The notes below the pieces were generated by a model. It was not told where the DNA came from. It searched no databases and worked only from the letters and a program-made list of their open reading frames with translations. 64,000 nucleotides of DNA from Orbicella franksi. Lineage: Eukaryota. The position numbers were made by a program, and so were the translations under genes. Location: assembly GCA_964199315.1 (NCBI GenBank), contig OZ116708.1, forward strand, positions 13,330,001-13,394,000, in the 5' to 3' direction. Positions 24,616 through 26,846 of the stretch are shown piece by piece. Position 1 is the first letter of the stretch. Every line of letters starts with the position of its first letter.

Positions 24616-24929
24616 ATGAAACAGGCCAGCAAACGAAGACTTAACATAGACTGTTCTAAATGGTGTATCTCGGTGTTATGTGCTCTCATCTTGTTGGTCC
24701 TGCTGCTTGGCCTCGTTTTCGTTGTGTACTATGAAGTTTGGGATCAATCACTGTGTACAGGCACCGACTCTACTCCCTGCTCACCGGGATTCTGTGTTCA
24801 CGGAGAATGCAGACAGAGGGATGGCCTGGCTTTCTGTGACTGCGCTCAGGGTTATACTGGGAAAAAATGCGACCTGAATGAAACTGCTCCTTGCAATCAA
24901 TCCTCTTATTTTGTGTGTCACATGTCCAG
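24616..24929 (+). CDS. Exon 1 of an EGF/LDLa/TSP1 membrane protein: signal-anchor, EGF, first half of LDLa
   Basis: TM segment WCISVLCALILLVLLLGLVFVVYY; EGF CSPGFCVHGECRQRDGLAFCDCAQGYTGKKC; donor AG|GTAAGA at 24929/24930 (phase 2). Confidence 0.85.
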
Positions 24930-25720
24930 GTAAGAAAGTGATCACTGAGAAATCTAGATGCAACAAAAAAAATCTTCAGGTGCAGCTATACACTAATATA
25001 AGGTGAAGCACGTAACATTTGCAAACAATATATACTAATTTACAAGAATGCGGCGCTTTTTAAAGTTCTAAATTTCTACAGTTGTAGTGATCATTAATAC
25101 CAATGCTATCCGGACCATAGCTGTATAATAAAGGACTCCCAGTTTCCCACTAAATTATTGTTTTGACATAATTAACCTGAGTGAGAGTTTGTTTAGACGA
25201 CGCATCTCATTCTTAAGCTAGTTTCCAGTTCATGGCTTCCCTTATGACGCAATTTTAAGGCCTAAAAGCTGTACTAGGCTATAATCCCATTCGGCGTACT
25301 TGCGAGAAACAATACCTTAAGATTGCCCCTGACTGCATGGTTTCCTTCAGATAATTAATCTAACAGACGGTTGTTTAGTAAGCAATACATTTTATTATTG
25401 GACGACTCAAATTCCTTGATTTCTCACAAAACTCTCTTTTGGCTGAATTGTTGGTGGTTCACGCATAGGCTTTTAAGCTGCTTCTTATTCCCTATTTATG
25501 CTTAATACGATTAAAAATGTCACGGAATAAAAAAAAAGTATTTTGACTAAAGTTATGACATATATCTTTGTTAGAGCGTACGATTAAAATGCACGGTAGT
25601 AGTAAATCTTAAAGTAATTTATGCAGAGGACCAAGTTCGTCTCAGATGAAAGGAAATGTTAGGAACCATAATGCAAGCATCCCAAGCCCTAATACGTGCA
25701 ACTGAACTCCTTTATCTCAG

Positions 25721-26846
25721 GGAATGTTTTAATACCTCAAAGCAATGTGACGGTCATTTGGATTGTTCAGACTCCTCGGACGAAATGGACTGTCCCCCGG
25801 GAACGCTTTCTCCTACGAGTGTGTCTCCAATGACGACACCAGCTTCTACACCGACATCTACTCGTGCTACTGCTGTCACAATAGCAACATTACCTTCGAC
25901 TACATTTAACACTACTACACCAGCGGTTACAACCACTCTCGGAACGAATTCATCGACGTATGATCAGACTACGACCAAGCTTCCACCCGAGGTTTCTACA
26001 GAGTCACCGCCTCCTCCAGCTGGCCAAAACTGGCCTCCCATGTGGTGTATATGCATCATAGTCATCCAGCAAATAATTATTAGTGGTTTTGTCATTTCCT
26101 TTTGGGTTACGAACTGTGGCAGTGGCGGTAAGGGTGGTAGTTGTGGTGGCGGTGGAGGTGGAAGTGGTAGTAGTGGTGGTGGTGGTGGCGGAGGGAGTGG
26201 CAGNNNNNNNNNNNNNNNNNNNNNNNNNNNNNNNNNNNNNNNNNNNNNNNNNNNNNNNNNNNNNNNNNNNNNNNNNNNNNNNNNNNNNNNNNNNNNNNNN
26301 NNNNNNNNNNNNNNNNNNNNNNNNNNNNNNNNNNNNNNNNNNNNNNNNNNNNNNNNNNNNNNNNNNNNNNNNNNNNNNNNNNNNNNNNNNNNNNNNNNNN
26401 NNNNNNNNNNNNNNNNNNNNNNNNNNNNNNNNNNNNNNNGCGGCGGCGACAGTGGTGGTGGTGGTGGCGGACGTCCCAAAATTGCTATTTCTATTCTTGT
26501 CTTTCTACTTGTTCCAGTAGTTTTAATTCCTCCTTTGATAGTTCTTCCATCCCTGGATCCTTCTCCATCTAACCCTAACAATCCCGAAAAGACCACACCG
26601 AGTCCAAATCTGCCAACACTGAAGCCTACACCCCCCGAGGAATGCAAGAAACCAAAATCAGTCGATGGGCAATGGACTCAAAGGTCGGCTTGGCAGGACG
26701 CAGGAACACAGAGTACACGGTTCCGATACTGCAATAGTCCCAAACCAAGAGATGGAGGTAGGTGTACATTGATAGATGTTTGCACTAGAAGTACAAACAA
26801 GAAGTTCTCAATGAGAAGTAAAGTGCTGCCGGTAACACATAAATAA
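25721..26846 (+). CDS. Exon 2: rest of LDLa, Thr-rich stalk, hydrophobic segment, poly-Gly, hydrophobic segment, Pro linker, TSP1-like
   Basis: Acceptor TTTATCTCAG|G. In-frame splicing rebuilds the LDLa CNQSSYFVCHMSRECFNTSKQCDGHLDCSDSSDEMDC. TSP1-like VDGQWTQRSAW..RFRYCNSPKPRDGGRC. The frame across the N gap cannot be verified. Confidence 0.75.
26204..26439. other. Assembly gap (N run) inside the poly-Gly (GGN) repeat
   Basis: About 236 N characters flanked by GGT/GGC repeats. Confidence 0.99.

Follow-up and report, generated by a model that had tools for sequence, protein, structure and literature searches.

A partial copy of a coral gene predicted to join a CTL/SLC44 domain, a mucin-type stalk, and a Serratia-type nuclease in Orbicella franksi

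The DNA analyzed here, referred to as the window, is a stretch of 64,000 nucleotides from Orbicella franksi (assembly GCA_964199315.1, contig OZ116708.1, positions 13,330,001 to 13,394,000 of the forward strand). Positions 24616-26846 of the window had been read, in a preliminary description made from the letters alone, as a stand-alone protein consisting of a transmembrane segment, EGF, LDLa, and mucin-like modules, a second transmembrane segment, a polyglycine loop, a third transmembrane segment, and a TSP1-like repeat. This region probably comprises the third and fourth exons of a remnant that has four exons in the window and represents either an uncollapsed second haplotype or a partial 5' duplicate of an eight-exon fusion gene located 154 kb downstream. 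Thus, what had been taken for a protein of its own appears to be the middle of a larger gene that fuses a CTL/SLC44 domain to a nuclease. The architecture of this gene is an undescribed combination of known parts, which is kept in several related corals and is already partly annotated automatically. In line with the earlier statement that it matches no described family, a literature search returned nothing relevant, either on this architecture or on cnidarian polyglycine membrane proteins.

Exon Structure and Transcription

Contigs from three RNA runs of different studies (X16, X18, and X20) were aligned to positions 24200-27700. In contigs of all three runs, position 24929 is joined to 25721 by removal of a GT..AG intron (24930-25720), with the donor 24929/GTAAGA in exon 3 and the acceptor CTCAG/G at 25720/25721 in exon 4 (slashes mark exon boundaries). 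This splice had been proposed from the sequence and is real: apart from the RNA contigs, it completes an LDLa module with six Cys residues.

The upstream border of exon 3 was also found in all three runs. Before position 24623, the loose contig ends read ...AAATAATAAGGAAAGCAATATCAAAAAATA, which is exactly window 23239-23268, the end of a 676-codon open reading frame (ORF) upstream of exon 3. Because of this match, the start of exon 3 was placed at 24625, behind the AG at 24623-24. The joint between the upstream exon, which encodes the CTL domain (...ISKNK), and exon 3 has phase 0 and is in frame. One of the RNA contigs carries 2,366 further letters upstream of exon 3. Independent confirmation of the joint is provided by the JGI contig L047 (2,672 nt, found via the junction string), which comprises the 5' untranslated exon, the CTL exon, and exon 3 with one 768-residue ORF; its positions 1-341 were aligned to 14534-14873, after which the alignment jumps to 21239.

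In total, four exons were found in the window, all on the + strand. Exon 1 (14534-14867, donor CTG/GTAAGA) is untranslated and derived from L047, its 5' limit being the end of the transcript contig and not a mapped start site. Exon 2 (21240-23270) contains the complete CTL/SLC44 domain, with an ATG at 21258, 671 codons, and ten hydrophobic helices; behind its donor AAG/GTGTGC, the intron continues the frame for two codons only before a TGA stop. Exon 3 (24625-24929) has its acceptor and donor used in the three RNA runs. Exon 4 is interrupted by an assembly gap of 236 N (26204-26439, a length that is estimated only) inside an array of GGY trinucleotides. The part of exon 4 before the gap (25721-26203) is supported by the RNA joint and by Pfam, and an X20 contig extends without interruption from the exon 3/4 joint as far as 26158. 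Behind the gap, exon 4 (26440-26757) has a single open frame and ends with the donor GAG/GTAGGT in phase 1.

Both ends of the protein in the preliminary description had to be revised. The ATG at 24616, considered as its start, straddles the used acceptor and reads ATA or ATC in three orthologous coral loci. At the other end, the donor suspected at 26757/8 (G/GTAGGT) is indeed used. In all three RNA runs, the loose end behind 26758 reads GAAAGTGTGCCCGGGTGA.CCATGTGAGAA and continues as GAAAGTGTGCCCGGG..., the TSP1-like repeat going on as GG-KVCPGEPCE; one RNA contig of 2,168 nt extends 1,926 nt past 26758. RNA depth over 26758-26846 is 3-7, which is the intron level, compared with 10-39 in exon 4. 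The ORF end at 26846 is a read-through of this donor: the tail RCTLIDVC...THK with its stop (26758-26846, + strand) is translatable only from unspliced transcripts of the truncated copy, and in the intact copy the frame continues to a putative ubiquitin-like fold and a nuclease.

In X18 only, an exon-level depth of 27-58 was found over 24434-24622, upstream of the exon 3 acceptor, the depth being zero in X16 and X20. This may reflect an alternative start or a retained intron.

It is unlikely that a stand-alone isoform is made in addition, from an internal promoter before exon 3, as a type II membrane protein beginning at ATG 24616 and, in the window's copy, ending at 26846. Such an isoform would account for the X18 depth beside the spliced form, for the presence of 56-71% of the window-type words of 26440-27400 in several RNA runs (one of them single-cell), and for an AATAAA near 27058. 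However, its ATG is not kept in the three orthologous loci, X16 and X20 have the CTL-spliced form only, and the coverage past 26758 stays at intron level and continues beyond 27571 without an end.

Modules of the Encoded Protein

Exons 3 and 4 are thus read here as a continuation of the CTL exon. The product of the latter was matched to PF04515 over profile positions 1-325 of 326 (264.5 bits, E=1.7e-78) and to the human CTL1 structures 7wwb and 9qu3 (E=3e-75), and it has ten hydropathy peaks. The hydrophobic segment earlier regarded as an N-terminal anchor (24667-24732 in exon 3, flanked by KRR) is the eleventh helix, following this complete ten-helix domain.

The EGF-like six-Cys module, the Thr/Pro-rich mucin stretch, the three hydrophobic segments, and the internal QQ of the preliminary description were all found. 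The EGF-like module is located in exon 3 (24778-24870); Pfam EGF (PF00008) gives it 18.5 bits (E=0.0024), under the cut-off of 21.5, and exon 3 shows its six-Cys pattern (C52...C82). The LDLa module is divided between the two exons, with its first third (24892-24929) in exon 3 and the remainder, to 25793, in exon 4. Across the splice, the peptide reads CNQSSYFVCHMS/RECFNTSKQCDGHLDCSDSSDEMDC, i.e., CNQSSYFVCHMS-R-ECFNTSKQCDGHLDCSDSSDEMDC, with the six Cys and the DxSDE of LDLa. The exon-4 part alone was matched to Ldl_recept_a (PF00057) at profile positions 13-37, with 25.4 bits vs. a cut-off of 24.1. For spliced peptides, profiles were additionally built from the coral's own genome, using 29 LDLa modules and 14 TSP1 repeats; in the LDLa profile, positions 3-35 of 35 were aligned only after the exon 3/4 splice.

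The rest of exon 4 encodes a mucin-like stretch of 77 residues, 62% of them Thr, Pro, or Ser (25794-26024), helix 12 with its QQ (26043-26108), a glycine run (from about 26118 to 26471, including the gap), and helix 13 (26481-26546). Behind this helix, a linker rich in Pro (26547-26642) leads to a TSP1-like repeat, of which exon 4 holds the first three quarters (26643-26757). Five N-x-S/T sequons were found. The three hydrophobic runs are ISVLCALILLVLLLGLVFVVYY, WCICIIVIQQIIISGFVISFWV, and IAISILVFLLVPVVLIPPLIVL, with QQ inside the second one; as measured on the downstream copy, their hydrophobic 19-mers have Kyte-Doolittle means of 2.3-3.2.

The TSP1-like repeat, with CKKPKSVDGQWTQRSAWQDAGTQSTRFRYCNSPKPRDGG after the Pro-rich linker, was described earlier as keeping W..W, RxRxC, and GGxC but lacking the CSxxC pair. 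W..W, RFRYC, and GG are present; the true GGxxC of the repeat (GG/KVC), however, is provided by exon 5, outside the window. No match to Pfam TSP_1 was found at E<=1 for the exon-4 piece alone, and the own-genome TSP1 profile was built for this reason. With this profile, the peptide of exons 4 and 5, RFRYCNSPKPRDGG/KVCPGEPCEKREC, scored 22.5-26.6 bits vs. 13.6 bits for the read-through. Likewise, the second half of TSP1 (PF00090), RxRxC ... P.P..GGxxCxG...C, is complete only with exon 5 added. The tryptophan ladder WxxWxxW reads WTQWSAW in the downstream copy and in the related coral locus L050, and WTEWSAW in the locus L013. Only in the window's copy does the ladder read WTQRSAW, its middle Trp being altered by a derived W>R change. 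In all copies, the CSxTCG Cys pair is replaced by QDAGTQST, which is five residues shorter and contains no Cys.

The Intact Gene Downstream

The exon-5 string is absent from the window, where it was searched with up to three mismatches. Its only occurrence in the genome is at C11:13514272, which is 157 kb further downstream than the window's donor, and 3.3 kb upstream of it lies a second exon 4 (95% identical as protein), belonging to a second copy of the locus with 96-98% identity. Herein, the window's block is referred to as copy A and the downstream block, on the same strand of C11, as copy B. Positions 1864-27800 of the window are colinear with C11:13467319-13512785 in direct orientation, at 92-98% identity and 135-154 kb apart. 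The shared block measures at least 26 kb in copy A vs. 45 kb in copy B, its left end being beyond the compared stretch; copy B is enlarged by two insertions, of 17.5 kb and 0.8 kb. Copies A and B are the only places in the genome where the CTL ORF and exon 4 were matched, and exon 5 was found only behind copy B. Where the RNA contigs deviate from the window, they mostly have the letters of copy B, and nearly always so in exon 4; the joint from 26757 to exon 5 was attributed to copy B because of these exon-4 letters.

The complete gene at C11:13.50-13.52 Mb has eight exons and encodes about 1,761 residues with 13 helices. Exon 5 completes the TSP1 repeat and adds a small spacer rich in Cys, followed by the N-terminal half of a putative ubiquitin-like fold. 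Exon 6 encodes the C-terminal half of this fold and the start of the nuclease, and exons 7 and 8 encode the Endonuclease_NS domain. PF00240 was found as two half-matches in adjacent exons (positions 1-30, 15.7 bits; positions 34-67, 19.7 bits), each below the cut-off of 25.4 for a 72-position domain whose exons were scanned separately. PF01223 was matched in the downstream exons of copy B only (28.3 bits, cut-off 23, plus 17.9 bits), and no part of this nuclease region was found in the window. The closest solved relative of the nuclease is the Serratia nuclease. Exact splicing of the tail from the ubiquitin-like fold to the nuclease is provided by the JGI transcript contig L046/P0153 (97% identical), in which DRGHLNPSG and TNIVPQ...N..W..E are intact.

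In a protein of copy B assembled by script, with the tail from the ubiquitin-like fold to the nuclease joined approximately, the CTL domain occupies residues 1-671, helix 11 residues 686-704, and the EGF-like module residues 723-753. LDLa begins at residue 761 and the mucin stretch at about residue 800; helix 12 (882-900) and helix 13 (1105-1123) flank a glycine run of 194 residues, including 175 Gly (906-1099). The TSP1-like repeat starts at residue 1165 and the ubiquitin-like fold at residue 1241, and the DRGH motif is found at residue 1471.

An inverted and more diverged paralogue of the part from the ubiquitin-like fold to the nuclease (exons 6-8; 82-88% as protein) is located at C11:13544389-13550660 on the - strand, about 22 kb past copy B. 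No exon-5 match was detected at this paralogue, which possibly represents a stand-alone counterpart of the nuclease in the fusion.

Possibly, only one gene exists, and copy A is its other haplotype, which the assembly retained in tandem by mistake. The two copies differ by 2-4% and by the structural differences of 17.5 kb and 0.8 kb, and copy A is interrupted within the array by a scaffold gap and gives way to repeats at 27800. In X16, a window-type exon 3 is joined to a B-type exon 4, and with this mixed joint the letters considered diagnostic of A and B segregate as a mosaic. With the relatives as outgroup, nine derived changes were found in copy A (two synonymous, seven non-synonymous) and nine in copy B (three and six), a symmetry that also suits two haplotypes. 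On the other hand, both blocks belong to one 28.9-Mb contig with other sequence between them, window-type words were found at 87-98% in 14 DNA runs from at least six studies, and the RNA is mostly of copy-B type in exon 4. A faster decay of copy A than of copy B was considered and rejected, as the derived changes are symmetric.

Copy A breaks off at 27800, and the sequence behind this point contains an array of hammerhead repeats, other repeats of multi-copy type, and a young long terminal repeat (LTR) element. The latter is a retrotransposon at 29696-36098 with gag-pol ORFs at 30512-35041, named by eye from its ORFs; its 487-bp LTRs (29696-30182 and 35612-36098) are 100% identical, which points to a very young insertion. 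Within the shared block, a 338-residue ORF at 13248-14264 (- strand), 270 bp from the 5' untranslated exon, was judged by eye to resemble a PIF/Harbinger DDE transposase.

The Glycine Array

The glycine loop between the second and third hydrophobic segments had been proposed across the assembly gap. Gly codons are found in the same frame on both flanks of the gap, and after the gap only that frame is open; no RNA contig bridges the two flanks. The copy B interval matching the gap is 464 nt long, with the same remainder modulo 3 as 236, and it contains no stop and encodes 149 Gly among 156 residues; the GGY array to which it belongs is imperfect and measures 538 bp.

Related corals have exon 4 as a single ORF, which passes through a Gly loop of 22 residues (P0001, P0002, and L013) or of about 190 residues (L050). 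The coding GGY array measures 55 bp at L013:2154-2208, about 540 bp in copy B (L010:9116-9653), and about 570 bp at L050:~17450-18020. Between these close species, the encoded polyglycine tract differs ten-fold in length.

An intron within exon 4, removing the array and the first half of helix 13 with the frame kept, seems improbable. Phase-compatible motifs for it do exist: the donors G/GTAAGG at 26127 and G/GTAGTT at 26136, and the acceptors CCAG/TAG/ at 26517 and 26520. Moreover, the fit of an X18 contig ends at 26135, leaving 30 of its letters unmatched, an X20 contig begins at 26520 with three unfitted letters, and the RNA coverage has a hole between the candidate sites. Nevertheless, no joint was reported there, though the exon 3/4 joint was found in the same alignment. 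An X20 contig reads through 26128-26158 with a G>A at 26128 that removes the donor, as in copy B, and the pyrimidine-rich "acceptor" resembles the codons of a hydrophobic helix. Without helix 13, finally, the TSP1-like repeat and the nuclease would be cytosolic.

Conservation in Related Corals

The gene was compared with three loci of related corals: L044 and L013, which have a nucleotide identity of 75-85%, and L050, for which the identity is about 90% in exons vs. about 77% in alignable introns. In L013, L044, and L050, the order of the CTL exon and exons 3, 4, 5, and 6 is kept, together with every donor and acceptor, and exon 4 is open. The sequences of two further loci, L048 and L049, cover only exon 6 or the last exon and are uninformative on exon 4.

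The ratios of non-synonymous to synonymous substitution rates (dN/dS), measured against two related corals, are 0.25-0.32 for the CTL domain, 0.26-0.39 for exon 3, 0.11-0.17 for LDLa, 0.09-0.40 for the TSP1-like repeat, and 0.26-0.53 for exon 5. These values indicate purifying selection on most modules. The mucin stretch plus helix 12 has 0.4-0.7, and helix 13 plus the Pro-rich linker has 0.42 and 1.7, based on 11-20 changes.

Models of the orthologue in Montipora foliosa were found in RefSeq as eight proteins, which we infer to represent one locus from their consecutive accession and isoform numbers. Four of them (XP_068699605-608) are named "choline transporter-like protein 1," X1-X4. X3 and X4 consist of the CTL domain alone (678 and 662 aa). 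X1 and X2 (XP_068699605.1 and XP_068699606.1; P0191 and P0193) comprise the CTL domain and exon 3, followed by frameshifted tails lacking exon 4, with exon 3 spliced either to an acceptor within exon 4 or straight to exon 5, both out of frame. These tails are either real transcripts skipping exon 4 or modeling failures at the glycine array. The other four (XP_068699609-612) are named "uncharacterized protein," and their 602- and 578-aa forms begin at exon 5. The fused ORF was not found among protein clusters, all of which have 670-673 aa, because ORF callers end at the stop just behind the CTL donor.

The CTL domain, the modular middle, and the part with the ubiquitin-like fold and the nuclease could alternatively be separate genes, the joints being conjoined read-through transcripts with no protein product; this has little probability. 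Separate genes would agree with the stand-alone CTL and stand-alone ubiquitin-like-nuclease models in Montipora RefSeq, where the fused isoforms are frameshifted, and with the stop two codons after the CTL donor. They would also agree with the inverted paralogue at C11:13544389-13550660, which has no exon-5 match, as well as with the CTL ORF and exon 4 being unmatched elsewhere in the genome. Yet the joint of the CTL exon and exon 3 is in frame, with its donor and acceptor kept in three related loci, and only the fused form was assembled in X16 (a 2,674-nt contig of depth 23.6, with no intron depth). In addition, exon 3 has no conserved start codon, and helix parity fits a fusion.

Proposed Topology and Function

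The fused gene would encode the following protein. CTL1 has ten helices, M1 and M2 being separated by an extracellular domain (PMC13160678), and for this reason the C-terminus of the CTL module is placed in the cytosol. Helix 11, with KRR before it, would cross from inside to outside, leaving the EGF and LDLa modules, the O-glycosylatable mucin stalk, and the five sequons outside. Helix 12 would run from outside to inside, making the near-pure glycine loop cytosolic, and helix 13 would return to the outside, where the Pro-rich linker, the TSP1-type repeat, the ubiquitin-like fold, and the Serratia-type nuclease with its intact DRGH are predicted. The outward orientation of the Cys-rich modules, already suggested in the preliminary description, fits this helix parity. 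The main reason for regarding the fusion as a single translated chain is that the three extra helices would bring every Cys-rich module to the outside.

From these considerations we infer, tentatively, that the whole locus encodes one 13-helix protein, in which a CTL/SLC44 module would be permanently coupled to an active, outward-facing nuclease on a mucin/TSP1 stalk, and in which a tolerated cytosolic polyglycine tract would have grown from 22 to about 190 residues. Functionally, this would be a nuclease at the cell surface, with a glycosylated adhesion-type stalk and a CTL-like membrane anchor. The window's copy would provide at most the anchor and the stalk, without the enzyme.

Several observations weigh against this proposal. 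No RNA contig of the three runs covers positions 26159-26519, and mRNA continuity across the glycine run and helix 13 is thus unsupported; no reads of the poly(A) run X24, for which raw reads were used, were aligned to the region. Expression of the window's own copy is unsupported too, the RNA contigs being mostly of copy-B type in exon 4. An open frame is trivially kept by a GGY array and therefore proves little, supporting the continuity of the DNA more than its translation. The segment of helix 13 and the Pro-rich linker shows no clear constraint, and the RefSeq models of the Montipora foliosa orthologue give pieces only.

A true fusion would be a natural "Rosetta stone" pointing to working partners of the CTL proteins. 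If the protein is a single chain, it would provide a testable hint on the partners of a family whose function and transport role are now under debate (PMC13160678), as well as a candidate surface nuclease at the coral-microbe interface. The length variation of the GGY array would then serve as a natural experiment, and the protein as a natural model, for long polyglycine tracts in animals. For annotation, it is relevant that the preliminary gene model, ORF callers, and the RefSeq Montipora models all fragment the locus, and that the window's copy, as a truncated duplicate or a second haplotype, is not to be listed as an adhesion gene of its own.

Comparison with Known Systems

The coral gene shares with the SLC44/CTL proteins (human CTL1, PDB 7WWB and 9QU3; yeast Pns1) a full PF04515 domain with ten helices, the first two of which are separated by a long loop. 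It differs from them in that its CTL part is encoded by a single coding exon, the nearest non-orthologous cluster being 37% identical, and in being extended C-terminally by about 1,090 residues, which add three helices and two ectodomains. An extension of this type was not seen in the best 150 CTL relatives, among which matches of 892, 911, and 916 aa were left unexamined; in a CTL relative of 1,608 aa, the CTL part is located at the C-terminus. The RefSeq Montipora foliosa orthologues share with the coral gene an in-frame CTL exon and the exon of helix 11 and EGF (X1 and X2) or the part from exon 5 through the nuclease (the 602- and 578-aa forms). These models are automatic; none has exon 4 in frame, and none has the whole fusion.

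As in the Serratia-type nucleases (PF01223; 1SMN and 1QL0; animal ENDOD1 and EndoG), DRGH and TNxxPQ...N...W..E are kept in the intact coral copy. In contrast to these enzymes, the coral domain follows a putative ubiquitin-like fold and would be attached to a membrane protein of 13 helices; the window does not contain it.

The three module types TSP1-like, LDLa, and EGF-like are also combined in mosaic proteins such as thrombospondins, SCO-spondin, and the complement components C6-C9. Unlike these mosaics, the coral protein has one copy per module, lacks the CSxTCG cysteines, and is predicted to be multi-pass, and the window's copy reads WxxRxxW. Copy B and the related corals, as the mosaics do, keep WxxWxxW, RxRxC, GGxxC, and the C-terminal Cys pair.

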